Shown here piece by piece: positions 3,001 to 55,421 of a DNA stretch of 64,000 bases; the first letter of the stretch is position 1; the number at the start of each line of letters is the position of its first letter. The DNA lies in sequence record PP885733.1; one strand, written 5' to 3'. The position numbers were made by a program, and so were the translations under genes. The notes under the pieces are model-generated. The model had not been told where the DNA came from. It worked only from the letters and a program-made list of their open reading frames with translations, and made no database searches.

Positions 3001-6000
3001 TTGGTAGGAGTCAGAACAACAACGCCTTGGTCACCATCAGAACGGAGTGTGTACTTCAGACCTGGTGCGTTAGCTGCGAGTTCATAATCACCGTACTTAG
3101 GTACGACTTTCAGAACACCAGTTTTACGCCAATCCAACTCGATCTCATCATCGGAAGAAACGATGGTGAAAGGTTCATCGGACGATTCAGAAATAACTGG
3201 GAGCTTAATGACTGCGAAGTCTTTGCCTTCCACAGGGTTAGCCGGAGCATTAGCACGGACAAATCCGAACACAGCTTCATCACGGCCCTGACCTTTTAAG
3301 GTATAAGGAAGGATAGAGTTTGACAGTTCACCGATCAGGAGGTTAGGTGGAATGATGGAACTCACCTTAGCCAGAGTAACCGCATGGGTCACGTCACCTT
3401 TATAGGTAAACTCAAACTTCGCTTCACCTTGTTCACCCGCTTTACCATTCAGCTGAGTCTGGAGAGACTTAGCGGTAAAGTCAATGCCGTTAAAGGTATT
3501 GATCTGGAAGTTCACGGTTGCATCGAGGGTGTAGGACTGACCACCAATCTCATAACCGAGAGTCAGAGGGAACTCAGTAATCACGGACTGGGTAGTATCA
3601 CCCTTGGTAACGTAATACTGGTTAGGTGCGACAAACGCAATGTAGTTGTTAGTACCGTTGGGAGACCAGATCGTGATTGGAATGGTCTTACCACGAGAGT
3701 CAACCAGAGTAACGCGGAACTGACCACGGTTATAAACGTTCACAACCATGTTCGGGTTAGCGCCAACCTTAACGGTAGGAACCATGATCTTAACAGGGAT
3801 CTGGATTGGAGCATCCCACAGCTGCCCGTCTTCCGGGTTAGTGTAGTCTGCACGAATCTCTGCCTGGGCATCGTAAGTCGTACCCTGAGCACCGCCTTGA
3901 TCCAGAGAGATGCGGAGTTTGTCATCCAGCTGTTCTACCAGAGAAGTTGCAGTGTTAGGTTTAGAGATATACGTGATTACCAGATTTGGATCACTGTTCT
4001 TCAGACGAACGCCTGAGAAGTTATATACCAGCGGGAAGTCAATTACGTCGGTGTGATAACCGGTGATTGAGCTTTGGGTACTTTCCAGGTTCAGACCTTC
4101 TGGCCATTCAACGTCAACTGTGTAGTTGGTATCAACGGTTGTGCCGTTAATCGTTGGATGTTCAAACACTAACTTCATCGGGTATTTGTAACCACGAATC
4201 AGGTTGTACTTGATGATAGCCTTTTCACGAACCGGATCCCAAACTGGATCTTCGATCAGGATGTTATCTGGGATAACAGAACGACTACGGTTTAAACGAA
4301 TACCGTTAGTGACGTTATCGTATTTGTATACGAAGTCGCCAACGATCTCACCACCAGTTCCAGACTTACCAACGATCTCAGTTGGAGATACATCAGCACG
4401 GAAGGTGATTCCATCCCAACCATCGATATTGAAGATTACCGAAACGTAGAGATAGTTAACCGGATAGTCGGAGTTAATGTAATAAGTGTAACGAGGAGAA
4501 ACCGTTGTGGTGAAAGCTTCTTTCTCTGCGTTTACGATAGTCCAGTTGCGACCACCTAAACCAACGTACTTATTACTAGTACCTTGCTGATATGGAGAGC
4601 CCATCAAGCCGGTCAGGTCACGTTCGCCACACATTACTTTGAATGGCATTACACCTGTTTCCCACATGCGGGTATCAACAGTGTTAGATGGAACGTATTG
4701 CAGATCCAGAGGTGGGATCTTAATCGTCATCGGAACTGTGATGTCGAGTGTCTGCAACTCACCAGTAACTGGGTCGGTCAGAGACAGTTCGTACTCCATA
4801 GCTGCGCCGTAGGACGAGCCAGGATACTGCAGTGTGTTATAACCAAAGGTCATTGAACTTGCAGCAGTGTTAACCAGGGTCACCTGTTTGCGAGGTTGCT
4901 TAGGTGGCTTGTACTTAATGGTTAACAGTGGATCGGTCAGGGCAATCTCTTCACCAGCGAAACTAATGCGAACAGTCGCGTCAGCAGTCTTATCCATGAT
5001 AACTGGATCTGGAGCGGAGATCTCGATAACCTTCAGTACACGAGACTGTTTAACGTTCGCAGTGATATACATGCGACCTAAACGATCTGGACCTGGGTTA
5101 GCGTCTTTCGGATCCTTATAGAACAGTTTAGCCACGCCGTCAACGATTGGATCGACTTTATAGTAAGTCCATACCAACATACCGTCAGCTGGGTCATAGA
5201 CCACGCCTTCATCACGAAGACCAGCAGGCATAACTTTACGGCTGGTAACCTGTACAGCTTTCTCAGTGATTTCTTTGCCGTCAGAGTAAACACGGAAACG
5301 AACTTGTCCACGCTCACTAGACAGACCACCGATACCCCAGTACATCGGGAACACGACTACGGCGTTGTTTACTTCGCCATCTTCGTTGTTACCATTACCA
5401 CCGCCGTCGCCGTCACCACCGCCGCCGGTTTCACCGCCATCTCCGTCACCACCAGGGTTGGTGTTTGGATCCCACTTCTTAACCAGGAACTCACCTTCGA
5501 ATTCATGATCGTGGTTGGCGCCGTCATATGGTTGTTTCCAGGTGAACTTAGCTGGGACAACTTTATCTTCATCGCCGGAGAAGATGATGTTCCACTGACC
5601 ACCTTCAAACTTAACGAAGGTTTCATCAGAGACCATAGCAAGACCGATCATCTTGTTGGTTTCATCTTTACCGTTGACCATTACCTTCCACAGTGGTCCG
5701 CCTTTCTGGTAACGAGTTACCGGACGTGGCAGAGGAGGAGTAGGAATGATCTCGATTACAGACAGTTTCTGGATAATGATCTTGATGGTACGGATAACGG
5801 TTTGACGCACACCGAACGGATCAAGATAGGTGAAGGTCTGATCGAATTCGTCTTCCACTTCTTCACCAGGTTTCTGGGAGTCACGGATAACGGTATAGTT
5901 GACAGCTTCGTCTTCTACACTGTCAAAACGAATCAGTTCCTTGTCACCGCGAGAACCCAGACGAATACGGAGTTCAGTAGCAGAGACAGGTTCATCACCA

Positions 6001-15855: not shown

Positions 15856-15879
15856 CTACAAGCCGATATTATCTTATTG
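15856..15879 (+). promoter_or_regulatory. Early-type phage promoter (ATATTATC-N4-TG)
   Basis: One of seven aligned copies upstream of plus-strand units. Resembles the TATATTAC early motif of phiKZ. Confidence 0.65.
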
Positions 15880-21700: not shown

Positions 21701-21742
21701 CATATTCCCCTACCCCTCCGTTTGGAGTGGGTAGGGGTTATG
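21701..21742. repeat. CATA-CCCCTACCCCTCC hairpin-TATG element, copy 1 (bidirectional terminator-like)
   Basis: CATATTCCCCTACCCCTCC-GTTT-GGAGTGGGTAGGGGTTATG between convergent genes; near-identical copies at 41291, 45673 and 53163. Confidence 0.8.
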
Positions 21743-21757
21743 CTTTATCTTTTCTTT

Positions 21758-22443: not shown

Positions 22444-22467
22444 TTATAGGCAGATATTATCCTATTG
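22444..22467 (+). promoter_or_regulatory. Early-type promoter
   Basis: TTATAGGCAG-ATATTATC-CTAT-TG upstream of 22502. Confidence 0.7.
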
Positions 22468-22501
22468 ACATACCATACACGTATTTTAAAGAGGCACTAT
22501 A

Positions 22502-22939
22502 ATGGAACATCCAGTAGACAATCAAAAAGCAATTGACACCGTTGATCAGAACCCAAGCCTTGCAGCTCGTATGATCTTCCGTGATCGTGCTGGGTTAGAA
22601 GCCAGTCCTGGGTATCAGAAATGTTTGGCGAAGTTAAAGCAATACGAAGAAGATATCGTTGCTTTCAAATTCGGTCTGGAAGTCGATAAATTCAGTACCA
22701 GAGGTTTGGGTATCTGGAAATATCCGATGTGGCGTTTCAATAAACTGATCATTGACAGGTTCGTTATTCCTGAACATCTGAACTGGATCACTAAACTGAA
22801 AGAAGTCATGGTATTACCGGTCGGTTTCCGCGTCGGTTTCCTGATGGATGAATTGGCGGCATACGAGAAGAAGAACGAAAAGCTTTTCACAGTGTGTACT
22901 AGACAGTACAAAAACCGCCAGGTAGTAATGGGGGCATAA
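22502..22939 (+). CDS. Hypothetical protein
   Basis: GAGG RBS. Shares a RGxG...WRFN motif with 23327. Confidence 0.8.
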   Translation: MEHPVDNQKAIDTVDQNPSLAARMIFRDRAGLEASPGYQKCLAKLKQYEEDIVAFKFGLEVDKFSTRGLGIWKYPMWRFNKLIIDRFVIPEHLNWITKLKEVMVLPVGFRVGFLMDELAAYEKKNEKLFTVCTRQYKNRQVVMGA

Positions 22940-22941
22940 CC

Positions 22942-23325
22942 ATGAACAAACCAACAATGCCTATAGATATAGATATTCGCAGTCAGATGGCACAAACTGC
23001 CCGCATTCGTATTTGTCAATCCAGAATAGAAAGACTTGAACATTACGTTCGTCTGGTGAAGCATGGGCTGATGTTACGCAAGCGGGAAATACGTTGGTGG
23101 AACATTGCTGGCAGGTTGGGGAATATCCTCTATACCCAAAGCTGCAATAAGGTCATGGTTCCAGAAGTAGCAAAAATCGTTAAACAATATCGCCTCGCTA
23201 TGAGCGCGCCTTTCGATCAGCCATTCAAGCAAGCAGAGTTAATGTACGATAACTTCTGCAAAGATCACAAGAGATCAATGGCTGTCTTTAACCAAAAACA
23301 AGATGTGGATACAATGGAGATGTAA
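22942..23325 (+). CDS. Hypothetical basic protein
   Basis: Packed in the operon, 127 aa. Confidence 0.7.
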   Translation: MNKPTMPIDIDIRSQMAQTARIRICQSRIERLEHYVRLVKHGLMLRKREIRWWNIAGRLGNILYTQSCNKVMVPEVAKIVKQYRLAMSAPFDQPFKQAELMYDNFCKDHKRSMAVFNQKQDVDTMEM

Positions 23326-23326
23326 A

Positions 23327-23692
23327 ATGGATTCCAGAGTTGCATTGTGCATGACCGTTCATGAAGATATGTTGAAGACACTGGTTCGGGCTAAACACGA
23401 CTTCAAATCAGTTCGTGGGTTTGGTGTGTTTATATTCCCCAACATGTTTAAACTCTGGCGCTTCAACCAAGTTATTCGTGGATGGAAGAAAGCCTGGACC
23501 TTCGACGATAAGTATCTGCAAGAGCTTATCAAGGATGGTAAAGATATTCCAGAGATGGCGGAAGTGATTAACGAGATGAATGATTTACTTGTTAACTACA
23601 AAAACGATATAGTAGGTGTTCTCTCTTACGCATATGGTAAAGAGACCGCTATCGACTTTTACAATATCTTCTCTTATGGGGGACGTGTATGA
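23327..23692 (+). CDS. Hypothetical protein
   Basis: ATG at 23327 after GGAG (MDSRVALC). Confidence 0.75.
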   Translation: MDSRVALCMTVHEDMLKTLVRAKHDFKSVRGFGVFIFPNMFKLWRFNQVIRGWKKAWTFDDKYLQELIKDGKDIPEMAEVINEMNDLLVNYKNDIVGVLSYAYGKETAIDFYNIFSYGGRV

Positions 23693-24207
23693 ATCACGTT
23701 TTATGGGCTGATCTGCACATCGATCATTTATCGAGTGCAAAGCACCGGGGCTTTGAGACTCTTAAGGATTATCAAGAGTGTGTGGCCGAAGCCTGGTGTA
23801 AGAATGTTACTCCACGTACCGACATCACGATCGTAGGTGATGCAGCGTTGTATAATGATGGACTCCTGTTCATCAAGAAACTTCCTGCTCGTCGCAAGAT
23901 CCTGGTATTGGGTAATCACGATAAAGAACGCGGGAATGACATTCGTGACATTCTCGAAGTGTTCGACGATGTTCATGGTCTGCAGAAAGTAGACAAGCAT
24001 CGTATCTGGATCCAGCACTGTCCGATGCACATCTCGCAATTGCGTGGTGGTCGGAACATCCATGGACACAGTCATCGCGACATCATCAAAGATGAGCGCT
24101 ACATCAACGTTTGCTGGGATCTTCTTCAGAACGGTCCAGTGGACTTTGAAGCCATCCTCACTGGGGAGTATAAATCCTATCGTGCGCCGGAAACCAATGT
24201 CGCGTAA
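23689..24207 (+). CDS. Calcineurin-like metallophosphoesterase
   Basis: DLHIDH, VGD, LGNHD, HCP and IHGHSH motifs. Confidence 0.9.
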   Translation: MNHVLWADLHIDHLSSAKHRGFETLKDYQECVAEAWCKNVTPRTDITIVGDAALYNDGLLFIKKLPARRKILVLGNHDKERGNDIRDILEVFDDVHGLQKVDKHRIWIQHCPMHISQLRGGRNIHGHSHRDIIKDERYINVCWDLLQNGPVDFEAILTGEYKSYRAPETNVA

Positions 24208-24448
24208 GGAAATAGGGGTCATGTTCTGGGATTCACTCATGACCCTGCTAGAGTCAGCCATCGCCAGGATGTTTCTCTTGGCGGTGTTCTGTACACTGAT
24301 CAATCTATTCGGACCGGCTATATTAAAGTCGGATAAAGCTGTGAGTGTATTCTGGAAAATTGAGATTTATTTATCGCTGACCTGGATAGTCTTATTGGTT
24401 GGTAAAGTAGCTGTTTGTCATTATTTAGAAAAAGGAAAGAAGCAATGA
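24197..24448 (+). CDS. Membrane protein (two TM segments)
   Basis: MSRKEIGVMFW... with hydrophobic segments. Confidence 0.6.
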   Translation: MSRKEIGVMFWDSLMTLLESAIARMFLLAVFCTLINLFGPAILKSDKAVSVFWKIEIYLSLTWIVLLVGKVAVCHYLEKGKKQ

Positions 24449-24732
24449 AAGCGATTCACTATCTGGTTCAAACTGTACGTGTGCTGATCTGTCTGTTATT
24501 CATTCTGTATGTAACAGTTGATCTGTACTTCGACTATCTGCCGTGGTTGGTCGATACCATCGAAGGTTATCGTCAGCCGATCTGGATGTTGGTCTTCCTG
24601 GAAGCGGGTTTCTCATTCGGTAAAGGTTATCAAAGCTGGCGTTGTCGCAAGCTGTGTCGTCACTTCTGTCCGAAGTGCGATCCGAAGCGTACCAACTTTG
24701 ACAAGATCCAATCGGGAGCTCGTAATAAATGA
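24445..24732 (+). CDS. Membrane protein with Cys-rich C-terminus
   Basis: Two hydrophobic segments followed by CRKLCRHFCPKCDPK; AAGGA RBS. Confidence 0.7.
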   Translation: MKAIHYLVQTVRVLICLLFILYVTVDLYFDYLPWLVDTIEGYRQPIWMLVFLEAGFSFGKGYQSWRCRKLCRHFCPKCDPKRTNFDKIQSGARNK

Positions 24733-25919
24733 ATGTGCAGAATCGTTACGAGAAGTGGTACATTGAACAGATGAACCGCATTATCAAAGAAGGGCAGTTC
24801 CGTGGTGATCGCACTGGGACAGGCGTATATTCGTTACCGTTCCTGAACTACACTCATGACTTGCGGGAATCTTATCCGCTGATGTCGAGCCGTGAGTTCA
24901 TCTTTGATCAACCTATCACCGAAATAATCTGGATGATGTCGGGTAGTTCCAATATCCAATATCTGAAAGACAACGGCTGTCCGTTCTGGAACTTCTTTGC
25001 TACCGATGGTGAAACCAAAGTTCCTCGTCAACTGACTCGCGCGCAGCGTATTCAGATCTATGCCGATATGAAAGGCGTTCCTTACATGCAAGCATTGGTT
25101 GCTTTCAGTCAGGAAACCTTTGAAGCGGCGGACGCAATTCTGGACAAACACAAAGTTCCTAACATGCAGGATGAAATTGTTCCTGCTGGTGAGCTTGGTC
25201 CGGTGTATGGTGTACAGTGGCGTAACTGGCCGAATGCGGATGGTACAACGTTCGATCAGCTGACTTACGCATTGAACACTTTGCGTGAAGATCCGAACAA
25301 CCGTCGCATCGTGGTGGATTGCTGGAACCCAAGCTTCCTGCCTAATCCGAAGAAGGCGCCTAAGCAGAATGCTGCTGAAGGTAAGATGGCACTCACTCCG
25401 TGTCATTTTGCTTTCGGTTTCTATACTGCTGAGATTCCTTTGTACAAACGTATCGAGGGTATTCTGGGTAAAGTGGAAACTGATGAACTCAGAGAACTGT
25501 ATCCGATCCGCATAACTCCGGAACGTGAAGCAAAGTTCGAACAGGTTCTCGCTGAGCACAATGCTCCAAAATACTACCTGGACATCAACTTCGTTATGCG
25601 CAGTAATGACTGGGTTCTCGGTCAACCTGCCAACATGAACATGTATTCAGCCATGCTGATGATGTTCGCTAACGAGCTGAACATGGTACCACGTTTCGTC
25701 AACTACACTGGTTGGGACTGTCATGTGTACAGTAACCATCTGGATGGCGTTGCTGAAATCAATCGTCGCTGGGAAACCGGTGAACATAAACACGCAACTC
25801 ACAAAGTTGAGCTGGTTAATGCCGGCGCACCAAAAGGGTTGTTCAACTATCATAAGTCTGATTTCCGCATTTCTAACTACATGCCGGAAGGAAAGATTAA
25901 ATTCCCAATTGCGGTTTAA
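24729..25919 (+). CDS. thyA: Thymidylate synthase (with two insertions)
   Basis: DRTGTG, ELGPVYGVQWRNW, NRRIVV, LTPCH, RSNDWVLGQPAN and HVYSNH motifs. Confidence 0.95.
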   Translation: MNVQNRYEKWYIEQMNRIIKEGQFRGDRTGTGVYSLPFLNYTHDLRESYPLMSSREFIFDQPITEIIWMMSGSSNIQYLKDNGCPFWNFFATDGETKVPRQLTRAQRIQIYADMKGVPYMQALVAFSQETFEAADAILDKHKVPNMQDEIVPAGELGPVYGVQWRNWPNADGTTFDQLTYALNTLREDPNNRRIVVDCWNPSFLPNPKKAPKQNAAEGKMALTPCHFAFGFYTAEIPLYKRIEGILGKVETDELRELYPIRITPEREAKFEQVLAEHNAPKYYLDINFVMRSNDWVLGQPANMNMYSAMLMMFANELNMVPRFVNYTGWDCHVYSNHLDGVAEINRRWETGEHKHATHKVELVNAGAPKGLFNYHKSDFRISNYMPEGKIKFPIAV

Positions 25920-25934
25920 CCGCAGAGGTTTAAC

Positions 25935-26303
25935 ATGGATAATGCAAAGTTCTTTGAATGCGGCGTAAGTGTACTGGATATGGTTTACGACGCACTGACC
26001 GGTAACAAGGTTCCACAAACTCTGTACCGGACTTCAATCAACGGCGCACCTACTGCCATCCTGGTCAGCGAGTTATTGGACTCAACCGTCGCAGTGGGTA
26101 AACGCAATAATCTTTCTTTCATGGCGACACTCGTCGAAGGTAAGACTCGCATCTATTATAATCATGAATGTGATCTCATTACCAAGGACTTTGACAGCAA
26201 AACTGTCTCGGCGTTCCTGTCGCATAGCGGTACTGTGAAGATGGTATCGGATACCAGTAAGGATAGCTTTATCGACCAACTCGTTGGCACTGTGCTGGCA
26301 TAA
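25935..26303 (+). CDS. Hypothetical protein
   Basis: GAGG RBS, 122 aa. Confidence 0.75.
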   Translation: MDNAKFFECGVSVLDMVYDALTGNKVPQTLYRTSINGAPTAILVSELLDSTVAVGKRNNLSFMATLVEGKTRIYYNHECDLITKDFDSKTVSAFLSHSGTVKMVSDTSKDSFIDQLVGTVLA

Positions 26304-26308
26304 TAAAA

Positions 26309-26338
26309 TAGCTGGGGATCCGAAAGGGTCCCTGGCTA
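26309..26338 (+). terminator. Stem-loop with GAAA loop
   Basis: TAGCTGGGGATCC-GAAA-GGGTCCCTGGCTA. No clear U-tract, so it could be a processing or stability hairpin. Confidence 0.45.
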
Positions 26339-26351
26339 GGAGATAATAACT

Positions 26352-26537
26352 ATGAACATCGCTTTGATTGTACCCTCTGTAGCTGTATTCCTCGGAATTA
26401 TCTTTACCCTTCAGGACTGGACTCCTAAACACGGCGTACTCGCTTTAGTGAAACGCTCTGTTAAAACGTCTGCCATTATCTTTGTCATCAGTGTTGTGCT
26501 GCTGGCAATTCTTCTTAACCAAACCAAAGGGTTCTAA
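26352..26537 (+). CDS. Small membrane protein (two TM segments)
   Basis: AGGAG RBS; hydrophobic 61 aa. Confidence 0.75.
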   Translation: MNIALIVPSVAVFLGIIFTLQDWTPKHGVLALVKRSVKTSAIIFVISVVLLAILLNQTKGF

Positions 26538-26539
26538 CC

Positions 26540-27529
26540 ATGTCTTTAGACAAATTCGAAATCAAACGTATTGCCGGTATCGCTTATCTGCAAACTCGCA
26601 TCCGTCAGCTGGACACCATGTACAACTACGTCACTATTGACGGCATGGTTGGCAATGACACCAAAACTGCATGGCGCGAAATTCTGGAAATTGCTCTGGG
26701 ACTTAACCGTCCATTTGCAATGCCGGTATTCGATAGCAACTCCATCACGTACATTCAGTCTACTATCCGGGATGCATTTAAACTGAAGCCCAACTATGTG
26801 AAACCAACTTTCATTGTGGATGGTCAGTGGGGTGATGATACCAAAGCAGCTATCGATGCAGTAATCGATATGTATGCTGAACGTGTCATCGTTCGTAGTT
26901 GCACTCGTGTATCTCAGCCAACTGGTCGTTTATCCGATCGTACATTGTCTGGGATGCGCACTAAGTTGAAACCTTATAACGGTCAACGTCCTCGTCCAAC
27001 TCAGTACGCTGATGATCAGGGAAAACATATCGAGGGATTTCATTGGTTTGAGAATCTCCCTCATGAACAAAATCAGGACGTCTGGAATCTGTTAGCCAAA
27101 GCAATGAACTTTGATAACCCTGTCGTATCTCCGGCTCATATGGCTGCTGCCGGTTATGTAATTGGTATTCACTGGTTCCAAGGAATGCCTGTTGGGATCA
27201 TTGTTTGGCGTACTGCACACACTCTGGAACTCAGGGCACGTGGTGAGAATTGTTCTGAGTTTGGGGATTCCAGAGTAGCATACCTGGCTGGGATTTATGT
27301 CAACAGAAGTATCCAAGGTCAAGGTATCGGCACTGGTATGTTGGTCAAATCCCGTAACCATATGGCAGACTTGGGTTACGCTGAGCTTCGATTCACTAAA
27401 GAAGGACGTAACGAAGAGATTGAAAACAGACTCTTCAGAACGTTGACTTGCGGACTCAGATATGTACCGTATGACCCGATGAATAATCTCGGTAATGAGT
27501 CAGAAACCCATTGTCGACATAAACTGTAA
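26540..27529 (+). CDS. Peptidoglycan-binding-domain-like repeats fused to a GNAT acetyltransferase
   Basis: YLQ...IDGMVGNDTKTAW and YIQ...VDGQWGDDTKAAI resemble PG_binding_1. YLAGIYVNRSIQGQGIGTGML is GNAT acetyl-CoA motif A. Confidence 0.7.
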   Translation: MSLDKFEIKRIAGIAYLQTRIRQLDTMYNYVTIDGMVGNDTKTAWREILEIALGLNRPFAMPVFDSNSITYIQSTIRDAFKLKPNYVKPTFIVDGQWGDDTKAAIDAVIDMYAERVIVRSCTRVSQPTGRLSDRTLSGMRTKLKPYNGQRPRPTQYADDQGKHIEGFHWFENLPHEQNQDVWNLLAKAMNFDNPVVSPAHMAAAGYVIGIHWFQGMPVGIIVWRTAHTLELRARGENCSEFGDSRVAYLAGIYVNRSIQGQGIGTGMLVKSRNHMADLGYAELRFTKEGRNEEIENRLFRTLTCGLRYVPYDPMNNLGNESETHCRHKL

Positions 27530-27535
27530 TACATT

Positions 27536-27565
27536 CCCTCTTACTCCTTAACGGGAGTAAGAGGG
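27536..27565 (+). terminator. Rho-independent terminator
   Basis: CCCTCTTACTCC-TTAACG-GGAGTAAGAGGG followed by TTT. Confidence 0.75.
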
Positions 27566-27598
27566 TTTATAATTGCTTCTGTTTTTAGTTGAATCCAA

Positions 27599-27622
27599 TC
27601 TCAGACCTATATTACCTAAGTG
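27599..27622 (+). promoter_or_regulatory. Early-type promoter containing exact TATATTAC
   Basis: TCTCAGACCT-ATATTACC-TAAG-TG. Confidence 0.75.
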
Positions 27623-27678
27623 TAAATACAACAAGTATTAATTCACCTGCATCCTAACCTAGTAAAAGGAAAACTATT

Positions 27679-28008
27679 ATGAACAACTTCGCATATGTAG
27701 ACCACATCGCTGACCGTAACGTTGAAGGCGTAGAATACATGATCAACACTCTGTCTGAAAAAGACGCATCTGTAGCTAAAGAAGCTGCAGTTAACGGTGT
27801 TGTAATCGGTGCTCTGAAAACTATCGCTCGTAACGTATTCGGCAACATTCCTTTCTTCCGTCCAGTTATCACTGACAACTCTGTTGAAACTTTCCAGATC
27901 TGGTTCAACGAGTTCGCAGAAGCTAACAACCTGACCAAACGTATCCACGTTACTGGTGTATGGTCTGAAGAAACTAAAGAAGCTTACGACATGATCGTAA
28001 ACGCTTAA
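27679..28008 (+). CDS. Stand-alone PGBD-like protein, likely highly expressed
   Basis: FQIWFN...IHVTGVWSEETKEAY resembles the PGBD motif. Strongly optimised codons; AAAGGA RBS. Confidence 0.7.
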   Translation: MNNFAYVDHIADRNVEGVEYMINTLSEKDASVAKEAAVNGVVIGALKTIARNVFGNIPFFRPVITDNSVETFQIWFNEFAEANNLTKRIHVTGVWSEETKEAYDMIVNA

Positions 28009-28042: not shown

Positions 28043-28210
28043 ATGACACGTTTAACTGCTATCATCATCGCTATCTGCTTCTTTGGTTTCCTGGGTCTGT
28101 GTGTGGCATTCGGTTCCACCTTCATGGCTAAGCTGCTGATCTGTACAGTAATCGGTACAGCAGTAGCAGCCGGGATCGCGGTAACAGCTCGTAATGCAAT
28201 CAAACGTTAA
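28043..28210 (+). CDS. Small membrane protein (55 aa; not in ORF track)
   Basis: AAGGA RBS; MTRLTAIIIAICFFGFLGLCVAFGSTFMAKLLICTVIGTAVAAGIAVTARNAIKR. Confidence 0.7.
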   Translation: MTRLTAIIIAICFFGFLGLCVAFGSTFMAKLLICTVIGTAVAAGIAVTARNAIKR

Positions 28211-30020: not shown

Positions 30021-30050
30021 CTGAACTGGAACCTCCGGGTTCCAGTTCAG
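30021..30050 (+). terminator. Rho-independent terminator
   Basis: CTGAACTGGAACC-TCCG-GGTTCCAGTTCAG perfect stem followed by a T-rich tail. Confidence 0.8.
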
Positions 30051-41290: not shown

Positions 41291-41332
41291 CATAATCCCC
41301 TTACCCCTCCGCAAGGAAGGGTAAGGGTTATG
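41291..41332. repeat. CATA-hairpin-TATG element, copy 2
   Basis: CATAATCCCCTTACCCCTCC-GCAA-GGAAGGGTAAGGGTTATG at a convergent junction. Confidence 0.8.
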
Positions 41333-41336
41333 TCTG

Positions 41337-42383
41337 TTACATAGCTTCCATCAGCTGACGGATGTATTCTTCAGTAGCACCATCAGTGTTTGCAATAGCA
41401 GCGCGCAGTGCATCTTTAATAATACCTTCCTCAACACCCTTAATCGCTTTCTGAGACAGGGAGTTAATGCTGACGATGGTATCACGGTAGATGGCCGCAA
41501 TCTCTGTGAGAAGCTTCACAATGGCCACACAACGACTTAACTGACGACCTTCATCAGTATGTTCGTGACCTTTGTATTTCTCGTTCAGATGATCAAGAGC
41601 GACAACAGCCTTGGCGAGTTCTTTCTGAGCTTCTTCGGAACGTTCAACCATTGCTTTAGCACGTTTAGGGAATGCCGTCTGGTTTTCCCTTGTCCAGTGA
41701 GCTTCTGCATTGCGAGCAGAGTCAACAATGAAACTCCACTCATGATCGATACCGAGTAAGTCTCGAGCACTCCCATCTGGGTCGATACGTTTAACTTCGG
41801 CAGCTCGCGTGTTCAAGCTACGAATCATCCCAGCTACTTTGGAAGCGATATCGTTAACCACGGTACCGGTGATTTTCTCTTCCAGTTGTTCTGGAGTAGT
41901 CACATCTGGAATATCAACCTTTTTGATTTCTTCGTTGACAGCCTTCTTAACTTCAGGAGGCATACGCTTGATGATGCGCATTACGCCTTCATCTTTGTCA
42001 TACTTAATATGAGCATCGATGCCCTGGTCGCGCAGTTCTTTAACACGCTTAACCAGAACGAGATCTTCAACGATCATCTTCTTGGCTTCGTCGTATTCTT
42101 TCTTAGAAGAACCGGTGAACCAACCACGAATGGTTTTGATCAGCTCTTTGATCCACTCATAAACCTTACGAGCACCTTTCTTAATAGAGTCAAGGAAACC
42201 TTCTTGACCGTCGAAAGAGATACCATTCAGAGTGAACACCGTTGATGCGTAGGTGGATTCAAAACCATCTACACTGCCGGACGGACCGGCAGCTACGATA
42301 GATTCGAAACCAGCAGCGAGGTTGTAGGCATTATCGAATTCTTGTTGAATTGATTCCATACCTGCGATTGCTACAAGTTCCAT
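41337..42383 (-). CDS. Internal-head-type virion protein
   Basis: N-terminal AGME/AGFE/GFE/GQE motifs resemble phiKZ-like prohead protease sites, followed by EGFLDSIKKGARKVYEWIKELIKTIRGWF. Confidence 0.7.
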   Translation of the reverse strand: MELVAIAGMESIQQEFDNAYNLAAGFESIVAAGPSGSVDGFESTYASTVFTLNGISFDGQEGFLDSIKKGARKVYEWIKELIKTIRGWFTGSSKKEYDEAKKMIVEDLVLVKRVKELRDQGIDAHIKYDKDEGVMRIIKRMPPEVKKAVNEEIKKVDIPDVTTPEQLEEKITGTVVNDIASKVAGMIRSLNTRAAEVKRIDPDGSARDLLGIDHEWSFIVDSARNAEAHWTRENQTAFPKRAKAMVERSEEAQKELAKAVVALDHLNEKYKGHEHTDEGRQLSRCVAIVKLLTEIAAIYRDTIVSINSLSQKAIKGVEEGIIKDALRAAIANTDGATEEYIRQLMEAM

Positions 42384-45672: not shown

Positions 45673-45715
45673 CATAACCCCTACCCCTCCTTTTTGGAGT
45701 GGGTAGGGGAATATG
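45673..45715. repeat. CATA-hairpin-TATG element, copy 3
   Basis: CATAACCCCTACCCCTCC-TTTTT-GGAGTGGGTAGGGGAATATG. Confidence 0.8.
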
Positions 45716-45717
45716 TC

Positions 45718-46497
45718 TTAAAGTTTTTTGCTTTCCTGGACCTGTAACTGCAGTACGCGAGTTAAGTCAGACAGCAGGGCTAACATCTTACCTACGAAGG
45801 TAACGTTGCCCACAAGGCCACTGATTGCGTCATTCAGCAATGTACCGGAGGTCTTGTCGAAGATGATCTCGTTGGCATCCACTTTATCTTTCAGCAGCTT
45901 GACAATATAGAGAACCTGGTCAACTTGTTTAGCCAATAACTCAGCATCACGAGCGCCGATGGTTTTAACCACGGTGTTGAAGTTGGTGCAGATATTGTAG
46001 GCTTCGCCGAAGCTCGGATACATATCCTGAACTGCACGAGTGTAAACACCAGTGTCAGAGATCACAGCAGCATACTGTTCTTTGGTCTCATCGATCATAA
46101 CGTCGTTGTCAGAGTTACGAATAGAGTGAGGAACTTTACCCGAAGTTGCGGCGAGCTTTACAGCACGATAAACAACGTCAGCCTGAGAAGAAACCAACTT
46201 CATAATTGGTATCGTTCTCAGTACCAATGCTACGTAATCTTTAAAGGAGATTTTTGCACCGTTAAAGAAAACTGGAGCCGGGATATGTTTGGATGCTACA
46301 GAAAAATAATCATTCTGGTTCGCCATCTTGTTCCACACATCAATTCCCTGAACTGTGTGGATAGAACTGTTAAAGTTCTTGGCATTGAAGGCGTCAATAC
46401 CCAGACTGACTTCCTTAAAGAAGGATACTAAAGTTTCGCCAAAGGTGAGGGCTTCACTTCCCTGCAATTGGTCGATGGTTTGATCTTGAATAGACAT
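45718..46497 (-). CDS. Putative virion structural protein
   Basis: 259-aa helical ORF with an N-terminal GSE motif; GGAG RBS; divergent from uvsX. Confidence 0.6.
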   Translation of the reverse strand: MSIQDQTIDQLQGSEALTFGETLVSFFKEVSLGIDAFNAKNFNSSIHTVQGIDVWNKMANQNDYFSVASKHIPAPVFFNGAKISFKDYVALVLRTIPIMKLVSSQADVVYRAVKLAATSGKVPHSIRNSDNDVMIDETKEQYAAVISDTGVYTRAVQDMYPSFGEAYNICTNFNTVVKTIGARDAELLAKQVDQVLYIVKLLKDKVDANEIIFDKTSGTLLNDAISGLVGNVTFVGKMLALLSDLTRVLQLQVQESKKL

Positions 46498-53162: not shown

Positions 53163-53203
53163 CATAACCCCTACCCCTCCGCAAGGAAGGGTAGGGGAAT
53201 ATG
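53163..53203. repeat. CATA-hairpin-TATG element, copy 4
   Basis: CATAACCCCTACCCCTCC-GCAA-GGAAGGGTAGGGGAATATG. Confidence 0.8.
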
Positions 53204-53216
53204 CTGTTTATTTCTT

Positions 53217-55421
53217 TTATCGGTTTAACGGACGTCCAGTAAAGATACGAGCCACGTCACCTACAATCGAGTCGTTGACTGTGGCCGCAATGTTACTTGG
53301 CTGGAACATCTGTTTAACGTCAGTTCTGAAGCGAGTCAAGCGACGGTTCAAGTCGTTATAACGCAACATGGTATCCAGATAGTCAACACCCGCAACACGG
53401 TTAACCCAGTCGTTATACTTACCGATATCGCCCAGGTAACGAGAAGACTGCTTAGCAATGTTCACCAAGTCAAGTGGGTTCGTCACACGGTTGATTGGAA
53501 CAGAGAGAACTTTGTCCAAATCTGCGATAGTTAAGTTGACACGACAGTTACGAGGTTTCATGTCCGTAGTCCAACCTAATGGACCGATACCGAATTCAAT
53601 CGATGCGTTCTGAACAATACCAGTACGGATAATAGACTTACCACGAGAAAAGCACTTGATAAGGAATGGTGCTGTGTAGGTCGCACCACCAGTACTGAAT
53701 GGTGTCACGAATGGCATGATCAGAGACAACGGTAAGAACACGTTAGTCGCAATTGAGTATGGGTGTGCGTAAGGAGCTTCAAAGTAGAAACTGAAACTCT
53801 CACTGTGCAAGTTAGTAGAGGAGTCGGACCAGTGCTCAGCAATCTCTACACGAGAGTTACCCATAAGAGCAAGTGGTACGTTACCAATAACAGAACCTGC
53901 GGCCATACCTGCTACAGCTTCAGTGATCGTACTGACGAATCCATCGATAACACCGATACCTGTTACACCACCACCTGCGTTGAACTTAAAGTCCTGTACC
54001 GCAGTAACCGTGGAGTTAAAGGTATCAGCAAGGGCAGAGCTTGCTGTCTGGTTGGCAAAGGAGTCACTGACCGAGCTAGTTCCTTCATAACGGAACGTAA
54101 CACCATCAAGACCGCCATAGAAGCCGTCCATTAACAATTGGTATATCTGAGCAGACCAACCGCTCTCATCGAGATCTGGAGCCTGTGTCATTCCACCTGG
54201 AACTGTCCCGTCTAAAGAAGGAGATGGTTCCGCTGCTGCGTTAGACGTTGTGAGTTTAGCTTCGCCGTTATTATTAACCGCGTACTTAGTCGCAATGTCA
54301 CGAGCATAGGTAGAGTTAGAGGTACTTGTCTGAGAGAAGCTATCTGTAGGGTTGACGTTCATCCCCACATCGGCTGACAGATAAGAAGACGCAACTTCAG
54401 GGTATGACAGTTCTTCGTTATCCCCACCACGAATCGCACCAACTGTTTTCATTTCCTGCATGAGGTAGTCTTTAGAGCTAGTCCCCGCAGTGAAACCAGT
54501 GTTAGCATTCACGAAGCCTGAATCACGAATGAGCTTATTCAGTACACCCTGAATAGCTTTGTCTTTGTCATTGACGTTACGAATACCAGTAGTGTCGTCG
54601 AGCTCTTTGATCTTCTTCATGAAGTAACGGAACTTACGAACACCACGAGTACAGACTTTCAGAATGTCGACAGTACCATCCTCGTTAATAGCATCTGGAT
54701 ACAAACTGTGCATATAAGAGAGGTTGTTCTTAACAATCTGACTGTCTTTAAGATAACCTTTCTGCCCACCTTCCTGGTGGTCACGGTCACCCTTCTTCGT
54801 GTTACCCTGATCCTGACGGTCATTAGGCAGAACAGTTAACGAGTAACCGGCTGCGATCATCAGGTCGTTAAAGATACCCTGAGCCGCAATGAAGTACTGA
54901 CCCATAGCAGGCTTAGCGTAATACCACTTGTTCTTCGGTGTACCTGTCATGAACTCCAAGAAGTTGTATGACGTGGCAACAAGCTGCGCAGGCCAGAATG
55001 CAATTGCACCTGCTGCTTGACCGATGTAGTAAGCGGTAGAAGGAGCACGACCTTTGTTGGCAATGATCGATGCTGAGTAATCGAACATATTCATAATGAA
55101 CCCGAGGATACCTGTGAACTCAGGAACGCCTGCGGTTAACGTCACAGATTGTGCGTTGTCATTATGGATACGTTTGTAGTAACGTCCCATGTTACCCAGT
55201 TGGTTTTCCATTAATGGTTTCGGATGGGGATCCGTGTTCTTACCAAAACCAGGCAATGGGTTTACAAATTTGTTATCACCAATAGCTGTGGAGAAGAAAC
55301 TGGTATACAGATCGTAGTCCGACCTTACCAGAACAGCTTCGGGATCTTTCAGCCCTTCACTCATCAATCGGAATGAGCGACTGACAATGTTGGAATCCTT
55401 GAAAGGTAAATTTACGCTCAT
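53217..55421 (-). CDS. Tail/baseplate structural protein (phiKZ gp182-like by synteny)
   Basis: 734 aa directly downstream of the giant tail lysin; GAGG RBS. Confidence 0.7.
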   Translation of the reverse strand: MSVNLPFKDSNIVSRSFRLMSEGLKDPEAVLVRSDYDLYTSFFSTAIGDNKFVNPLPGFGKNTDPHPKPLMENQLGNMGRYYKRIHNDNAQSVTLTAGVPEFTGILGFIMNMFDYSASIIANKGRAPSTAYYIGQAAGAIAFWPAQLVATSYNFLEFMTGTPKNKWYYAKPAMGQYFIAAQGIFNDLMIAAGYSLTVLPNDRQDQGNTKKGDRDHQEGGQKGYLKDSQIVKNNLSYMHSLYPDAINEDGTVDILKVCTRGVRKFRYFMKKIKELDDTTGIRNVNDKDKAIQGVLNKLIRDSGFVNANTGFTAGTSSKDYLMQEMKTVGAIRGGDNEELSYPEVASSYLSADVGMNVNPTDSFSQTSTSNSTYARDIATKYAVNNNGEAKLTTSNAAAEPSPSLDGTVPGGMTQAPDLDESGWSAQIYQLLMDGFYGGLDGVTFRYEGTSSVSDSFANQTASSALADTFNSTVTAVQDFKFNAGGGVTGIGVIDGFVSTITEAVAGMAAGSVIGNVPLALMGNSRVEIAEHWSDSSTNLHSESFSFYFEAPYAHPYSIATNVFLPLSLIMPFVTPFSTGGATYTAPFLIKCFSRGKSIIRTGIVQNASIEFGIGPLGWTTDMKPRNCRVNLTIADLDKVLSVPINRVTNPLDLVNIAKQSSRYLGDIGKYNDWVNRVAGVDYLDTMLRYNDLNRRLTRFRTDVKQMFQPSNIAATVNDSIVGDVARIFTGRPLNR

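Follow-up and report, generated by a model that had tools for sequence, protein, structure and literature searches.

We consider it very probable that Pantoea phage Survivor encodes a soluble cytoplasmic two-domain protein in which a paralogue of the endolysin wall-binding module is joined, through a flexible basic linker, to a complete, divergent GNAT domain that is under purifying selection and keeps an intact acetyl-CoA loop. Its gene would close a transcription unit with a phosphoesterase and a thymidylate synthase, away from the endolysin. The window, i.e. the whole stretch of 64,000 nucleotides analysed here, is part of record PP885733.1 (271,576 bp, an OBP-like jumbo phage), and adding 186000 to a window coordinate gives the record coordinate. 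The fusion gene (26540..27529, on the + strand like all features located below, with an ATG start) was delimited from the ORF list, GenBank and Pfam; it is 100% identical to CDS XCN28327.1 of Survivor and specifies 329 amino acids, arranged as a tandem-PBD module, a basic linker and a GNAT domain. No signal peptide or transmembrane segment was found in the protein, whose maximal Kyte-Doolittle mean over 19 residues is 1.32, in line with the absence of a signal peptide already remarked in the preliminary description. The architecture given there, a peptidoglycan-binding-like N-terminus followed by a GNAT, is now backed by profile and pairwise comparisons and by the fold.

Both domains are well known separately, and the family members are deposited as hypothetical proteins; our literature searches brought up no account of a PGBD-GNAT protein. 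A comparison of the whole model with AlphaFold DB clusters (1,000 candidates aligned) returned matches to the GNAT domain only, with the two-domain layout in none of them. TM by query was at most 0.34 in these matches, and the N-terminal wall-binding module had no counterpart there.

The N-terminal module (residues 1-120, 26540..26899) is assigned to the four-helix OBPgp279 type of peptidoglycan-binding module by AF2, hhalign, BLASTP and ESM Atlas results. It carries two loops of the kind for which the consensus D-G-(Pho)2-G-K/N-G/N-T has been given (PMC3352856), namely DGMVGNDT (residues 34-41, 26639..26662) and DGQWGDDT (residues 94-101, 26819..26842). Pfam matches to the fusion protein are sub-threshold for PG_binding_3 (17.1 bits for a cut-off of 24.6) and missing for PG_binding_1, and similar sub-threshold PG_binding_3 matches recur in 10 of 11 close homologues. 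Searched against 1.8 billion proteins, the family profile reaches bona fide multi-repeat PG_binding_1/3 proteins via positions 15-50 (E 1e-8 to 1e-4), and the language-model and shape neighbours of residues 1-125 in the ESM Atlas are all PG_binding_1/3 clusters. Closer to home, the module shares 29% identity over 104 residues with the N-terminus of Survivor's own endolysin (BLASTP, E 5e-7). Moreover, an hhalign comparison of the module family with its counterparts in the endolysins of five phages (OBPgp279 among them) reaches 97.7% probability and E 2.3e-12 over 101 columns.

The AF2 model of the module is confident (pLDDT 93.3, pTM 0.86) and shows helices at residues 5-24, 39-53, 68-81 and 99-119 packed as a single compact unit. 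The two PG_binding_1 motifs previously proposed thus stand as loops, both of which are present, but not as two independent domains. As an EGFP fusion, residues 1-117 of OBPgp279 have been shown to attach to the wall of permeabilised cells, whereas neither half alone does so (Walmagh et al., PMC3352856); the predicted one-unit fold agrees with this binding of PBD1 and PBD2 only as a whole. Homology of the N-terminus to PGBDs is seen in the sequence, while its fold matches theirs only in part. A Foldseek search of the PDB with the module model gave nothing below E 2, and VIA comparisons with the PGBD structures 4xxt, 4lpq, 5nm7, 9h68, 5anz and 5tv7 gave Z values of 3.6-4.2 over 58-71 residues, which is under the noise level for helical folds. 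In the ESM Atlas, the TM of the module against canonical three-helix PGBDs is 0.35-0.47. The CH and COMMD helical domains that head the VIA alignments (Z up to 6.2) were regarded as generic helical matches. In BFVD, the fold is common only to family members and to stand-alone paralogues (TM 0.72-0.80).

One of these paralogues is encoded by the next gene after the fusion (27679..28008, 109 aa; BLASTP E 5e-7 over the full length), with orthologues in pEt-SU, Yubaba, N1M2 and OBP (gp237). Survivor and OBP therefore each hold three copies of the module: one belongs to the endolysin, one to the GNAT fusion, and one makes up the stand-alone protein of 109-116 aa. A phylogenetic tree separates a clade of endolysin copies (100/100) from one of stand-alone copies (100/99), the latter grouping with the fusion copies. 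Phage EL has only the endolysin copy among those found, and phiKZ gave zero matches. In the stand-alone copies, the first loop motif is gone and the second has become T-G-V-W-S/D/N-x-x-T (TGVWSEET in Survivor). The pEt-SU stand-alone orthologue in BFVD nevertheless superimposes on our N-terminal model with a TM of 0.72/0.80; the fold is retained without the loops, which are therefore unnecessary for folding. None of the 33 members of the fusion family has lost either D-G-(Pho)2-G-x-x-T loop. Our main argument that the module of the fusion probably still binds a peptidoglycan-like ligand is precisely that both loops have been preserved throughout the family even though folding does not require them. 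Those conserved residues could instead serve a new ligand. The demonstration of peptidoglycan binding concerns only the endolysin paralogue of another phage, on sacculi and not on soluble precursors.

The linker (residues 121-162, 26900..27025; around 45 residues between the module and the GNAT domain) is basic, with a pI of 10.9 for residues 116-162, and is modelled with low confidence (pLDDT 40-49). The GNAT domain that follows (residues 163-329, 27026..27526) is supported by fold and profile matches and by the codon comparison described below. Acetyltransf_1 (PF00583) scores 24.3 bits over residues 211-283, above the Pfam cut-off of 20.7, and is matched in 11 of 11 close homologues (best E 9.4e-10). 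Profile matches of the family among PDB sequences are almost only GNATs, Naa30, Hpa2 and AAC(6') among them. The GNAT fold foreseen in the preliminary description was borne out by the AF2 model, which shows the canonical order of elements (b1-a1-a2-b2-b3-b4-a3-b5-a4-b6) at a pLDDT of 69; all 34 Foldseek matches in the PDB at E<1e-3 are GNATs. In the ESM Atlas, residues 163-329 match GNAT clusters with a TM by target of 0.70-0.79 over 137-154 residues. The domain fits no specific subfamily, identity in the best 50 Foldseek PDB matches being 7-18%, and the nearest structures are generic (Naa60, Naa30, AAC(6') and Hpa2). NCBIfam matches of the fusion to AAC(6') lie far below the cut-off and PADLOC gave nothing informative. 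The pyrophosphate loop of motif A (Q259-G-Q-G262-I-G264, 27314..27331) is located in the b4-a3 loop of the model, within YVNRSIQGQGIG (27296-27331). This loop and the two peptidoglycan-binding-like motifs (26639-26662 and 26819-26842) lie where the preliminary description had put them. In our reading of the family alignment, the usual a4 tyrosine position is occupied by F, H or Y.

Comparison with a metagenomic relative (L028, 97% identical) revealed 0 nonsynonymous and 11 synonymous codon differences in the 167 codons of the GNAT domain, and 11 nonsynonymous and 15 synonymous differences in the 120 codons of the N-terminal module. The former ratio argues for strong purifying selection on the GNAT domain in the Survivor lineage, where this half of the protein apparently is a working acetyl-CoA-dependent acetyltransferase. 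In the genomes of Survivor, pEt-SU and Yubaba, the fusion is the only GNAT detectable with Pfam.

Searches by tblastn recovered relatives in Edwardsiella phage pEt-SU, Serratia phages Yubaba and Sureiya and Klebsiella phage N1M2 (25-31% identity), and a profile search added gp236 of Pseudomonas phage OBP. All six phages, Survivor included, are OBP-like, phiKZ-related jumbo phages, and OBP is among the chimallin-encoding phages listed in PMC10299810. The fusion family is restricted to OBP-like phages, where thymidylate synthase and DHFR always flank its slot. Metagenomic contigs and phages from Survivor to OBP share one gene order: thymidylate synthase (392-396 aa) is followed by small genes, then by the fusion and the stand-alone module, and finally by the HAD phosphatase and DHFR. 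The annotated 'hypothetical proteins' OBP gp236, pEt-SU gp159 and N1M2 gp186 are true family members in this same syntenic slot; all three are uncharacterised, and gp236 and gp186 differ from the Survivor protein in being without motif A.

The catalytic half indeed varies across the family. Motif A is kept in 17 of the 32 full-length members and is absent from OBP gp236, N1M2 gp186 and the Sureiya protein; catalysis is therefore not a universally conserved feature of the family. The a1-a2 segment (LLAKAM..NPVV) is more widely conserved than motif A. OBP, with its degenerate gp236, encodes a further GNAT on its own, gp240, within the fusion locus and four genes downstream, and the N1M2 genome has no GNAT detectable with Pfam. 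We considered gp240 as a donor or replacement of the fused GNAT and rejected it (BLASTP E 0.16, no specific relationship). Between Yubaba and Sureiya, protein residues 1-128 are 100% identical and the DNA flanking the swapped segment is 95-100% identical, whereas the linker and GNAT half share only 36-48% identity as protein and 56-71% as DNA. We read this difference as a clean exchange of modules where the two domains meet. Since only the GNAT half has been sharply replaced between these near-identical Serratia phages, the comparison suggests a conflict-type turnover of the catalytic half.

Transcription signals around the fusion can be read from the sequence. A 13-bp terminator-like stem-loop lies directly after its stop codon (27536..27565, dG -22.7 kcal/mol, z -6.4) and is conserved in five phages (Survivor, pEt-SU, Yubaba, N1M2 and OBP), with four pairs changed on both sides. 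The phiKZ octamer TATATTAC, which we take to be of the early-promoter class, is not enriched on its own in the window, whereas the longer OBP/N1M2 consensus is. The latter consensus was predicted for N1M2 and OBP, and its core resembles the phiKZ promoter octamer (PMC7058600, Table 2). It occurs at seven sites in the window, for 0.89 expected, all of them on the + strand, each lying 42-77 nt before an ORF of this strand. The nearest such promoter-like motif upstream of the fusion, at 22450..22467, is the probable start of its unit, and another precedes the stand-alone paralogue (27599..27624, with a copy at 27605; consensus from PMC7058600, Table 2). Considering the motif at 22450 together with the hairpin at 27536, the fusion would therefore be the last gene of a unit of approximately 22450-27565, predicted to hold the phosphoesterase and thymidylate synthase as well; the next predicted unit is opened by the stand-alone paralogue and includes the HAD phosphatase and DHFR. 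Pfam assigned no wall-related function to the other genes of these two units. Judged from these motifs, expression would probably precede lysis. The absence of an export signal, the distant endolysin, the predicted unit with thymidylate synthase and the conserved synteny speak for an action of the fusion in the cytoplasm that is independent of lysis. Among the public RNA and DNA runs, none contained more than 24% of the sampled words.

In GenBank, XCN28327.1 is named 'lytic transglycolylase', and a weak PHROG endolysin match could be taken to favour an endolysin or lytic transglycosylase, but this match is limited to residues 14-49, within the binding module. Pfam, PHROGs and NCBIfam revealed no muralytic domain in the fusion, and its C-terminus is a GNAT by both sequence and fold. 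Moreover, the real endolysin of Survivor, a 288-aa protein with the same N-terminal module, is encoded elsewhere (record 254691-255557), outside the window and about 42 kb from the fusion. As judged from these domain assignments, the transglycosylase label is wrong; this reading is refuted at the domain level and we give it practically no credence.

Two small membrane proteins are encoded near the fusion. As indicated in the preliminary description, a two-TM gene is coupled upstream: it encodes 61 aa (26352..26537), and its stop codon lies 2 nt before the ATG of the fusion, which has AAAGGG upstream. It has an orthologue in pEt-SU and analogous ORFs in N1M2 and OBP, and is absent in Yubaba and Sureiya. 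Its only PHROG match is to a group of unknown function (E 0.012), with no PHROG holin match. The other, a two-TM protein of 55 aa (28043..28210), is encoded downstream of the stand-alone paralogue and kept in pEt-SU and OBP (gp238). With the 2-TM gene adjoining a non-muralytic partner, this pairing missing in Yubaba and Sureiya, and the endolysin located elsewhere, the fusion gene does not belong to a lysis cassette.

What could such a protein do? The reading that we favour, tentatively, is that of a targeting domain and an enzyme acting together in the infected cell to acetylate a cytoplasmic peptidoglycan precursor or a recycled muropeptide. The wall-binding module would capture a peptidoglycan-type ligand that is accessible on the cytoplasmic side; this might be UDP-MurNAc-peptide, lipid I/II on the inner leaflet, or an anhydro-muropeptide or stem peptide from recycling. 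The GNAT domain would then move an acetyl group from acetyl-CoA to a free amine of this ligand, the epsilon-amine of meso-DAP and the free N-terminus of the stem peptide being obvious acceptors, and wall precursors would thereby be diverted or capped during infection. One may speculate that the fusion is modulated or localised by the degenerate paralogue next to it and by the two small 2-TM proteins. A fuller version of this scenario, which we think unlikely as a whole, is that the endolysin-derived module captures cytoplasmic precursors or muropeptides, that the GNAT N-acetylates a free amine (for instance that of meso-DAP), capping cross-linking or recycling from inside, and that the paralogue and the relatives without motif A are non-catalytic binders of the same ligand.

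Fem and MurM proteins offer a parallel for the modification of wall precursors in the cytoplasm, as they are GNAT-fold enzymes that act on UDP-MurNAc-pentapeptide or lipid II, at the amine of the stem peptide. They have two GNAT-like domains and no PGBD, and use aminoacyl-tRNA instead of acetyl-CoA. The resemblance to the proposed precursor acetylation is one of functional analogy, with no homology detected. Another possible model is Rac, which has no wall-binding module and acts on the alpha subunit of RNA polymerase. Like Rac of phiKMV-like phages and the phage GNATs predicted to modify host proteins (PMC7824862), the fusion is a phage GNAT that is probably expressed before lysis; it is likened to Rac by role, no sequence relationship having been shown. 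A Rac-like protein acetyltransferase involved in host takeover, with the helical module repurposed to dock on a host or phage protein, would fit the N-terminal and lysine acetyltransferases found among the best PDB matches (Naa30, Naa60, Hpa2, Ard1 and HP0935) and the published prediction that host proteins are the targets of jumbo-phage GNATs (PMC7824862). The departure of the N-terminal module from the canonical PGBD fold points in the same direction, as does the swap of the linker and GNAT alone between Yubaba and Sureiya, a mosaic pattern typical of conflict genes. However, the likeness to N-terminal acetyltransferases is generic (TM 0.44-0.66), the genomic context suggests no target, and the universal conservation of both peptidoglycan-binding loops, dispensable for the fold, speaks against a mere docking role. 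We regard this Rac-like reading as somewhat less likely than precursor acetylation.

The loss of motif A in around 15 of the 32 full-length members, set beside the universal PBD loops, also brings to mind a mainly non-catalytic binder, a pseudoenzyme in which the N-terminal module and the acceptor face of the GNAT bind the ligand and acetyl transfer is dispensable. The wider conservation of the a1-a2 segment would agree with such a role, as would the situation in OBP, with its degenerate gp236 and separate gp240, and in N1M2, in which no GNAT was detected. Yet the Survivor lineage retains a canonical motif A, a Pfam score above the cut-off and the complete lack of nonsynonymous changes among the 11 differences mentioned above, and we find this explanation quite unlikely. 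Still less probable, in our opinion, is an accessory role in lysis, in which the protein would accumulate like an endolysin, exit via the holin lesion (perhaps with the 2-TM proteins), bind the sacculus, and modify peptidoglycan or compete with or regulate the endolysin. It shares its N-terminal module with the endolysin, is without signal peptide as are OBPgp279-type endolysins, and is accompanied by 2-TM genes on both sides in Survivor, pEt-SU and OBP and by one upstream in N1M2. Against this, acetyl-CoA would be present outside the cytoplasm only transiently at lysis, the predicted unit of the fusion contains nucleotide-metabolism genes and lies about 42 kb from the endolysin, neither Yubaba nor Sureiya has the 2-TM genes, and PHROGs gave no holin match.

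Precursor acetylation, our preferred reading, would place a familiar binding module in a new setting. To our knowledge, the wall-binding modules of endolysins from phages of Gram-negative bacteria are known in one role only, that of carrying muralytic domains, and those of OBPgp279 and KZ144 are being engineered for it. With the OBPgp279, EL188 and KZ144 type of endolysins from phiKZ-related phages, the fusion has in common the N-terminal module with two D-G-(Pho)2-G-x-x-T loops and the lack of a signal peptide, its module being homologous to the OBPgp279-type module over about 100 residues. It differs from them in having a GNAT where the endolysins have a GH19, lysozyme or transglycosylase domain, and in the location of its gene in a nucleotide-metabolism unit and not at the endolysin locus. 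With the GNATs of PF00583 (Naa60, AAC(6') and Hpa2), it shares the order of the fold, the QxxGxG motif A between b4 and a3 and a Pfam score above the cut-off, but it is very divergent and carries an N-terminal wall-binding module.

In this phage genome, the endolysin module has thus been duplicated twice, and one copy has been joined to an acetyl-CoA-dependent transferase that is apparently maintained by selection. The resulting protein is without a route to the periplasm and is predicted to be co-expressed with nucleotide-metabolism genes. If the module still recognises peptidoglycan chemistry, the phage would be targeting wall precursors from within the cytoplasm; otherwise, the fusion would be an example of PGBD repurposing. 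Either way, our analysis provides a testable annotation for OBP gp236 and its relatives, and corrects the GenBank product name. Should the N-acetylation of cytoplasmic precursors prove to be true, it would represent a previously unknown viral way to sabotage or re-tune the synthesis of the host wall.

The GenBank name of the fusion protein XCN28327.1 (window 26540-27529), 'lytic transglycolylase', finds no support in domain evidence, and probably originates from the binding module that it has in common with the endolysin. The real endolysin of Survivor is encoded outside the window (PP885733.1 254691-255557, positions 1297-2163 of locus L009) and its GenBank product name is lytic transglycosylase. 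Its N-terminal binding module is common with that of OBPgp279, the endolysin of Pseudomonas phage OBP, in which a GH19-type domain has been described (PMC3352856), whereas the C-terminal halves of the two enzymes differ; no Pfam family was recognised in that of Survivor. Within this lineage, therefore, one and the same module has been joined to three or more different C-terminal partners.

The partner half of the fusion gene is itself variable. Between the Serratia phages Yubaba and Sureiya, sharp divergence is confined to the linker and GNAT half (fusion-gene locus 5375-5880, L003 versus L005), where amino acid identity falls to 36-48%, whereas the N-terminal half is 100% identical and the remainder of the comparison 95-100% identical. 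The acetyl-CoA loop, motif A, is intact in Yubaba (RGKGIG); its Sureiya counterpart reads RGNHIG. In OBP, the fused GNAT is without motif A, and the sole Pfam-detectable GNAT of the genome is gp240, a separate canonical protein of 160 aa encoded between the HAD gene and DHFR (L018:5190-5672). A divergence hot spot lies in the thymidylate synthase gene (window 24729-25919), whose DNA is 67-75% identical to that of the 97%-identical metagenomic relative in one 300-nt segment (25351-25650) and 91-98% identical elsewhere. The 396-aa product exceeds bacterial models of 264-266 positions by about 130 residues, and its Pfam match is split into two stretches.

Immediately 3' of the fusion gene, a predicted regulatory element comprising a hairpin and a promoter-like motif (window 27530-27678) is far better conserved than the flanking genes. 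In the alignment of five phages, including OBP, per-column DNA identity is about 69%, as against just 20-35% for the proteins encoded on either side. A family of G+C-rich intergenic hairpins, of the pattern CCCCTACCCCTCC ... GGGTAGGGG, recurs at window 21707-21757, 41298-41348, 45679-45729 and 53168-53218, and window 30021-30050 holds an additional hairpin of 13 bp. All of these probably serve the phage as terminators. Allowing up to three mismatches to the N1M2/OBP-type promoter consensus RYAKATATTATYWAAGTG, we counted seven copies in the window (0.89 expected), all on the + strand, at 15862, 22450, 27605, 30085, 33379, 34807 and 50947. Each lies 42-77 nt from a downstream + strand ORF (7/7). 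These promoter-like copies give a predicted transcription-unit map of the nucleotide-metabolism block.
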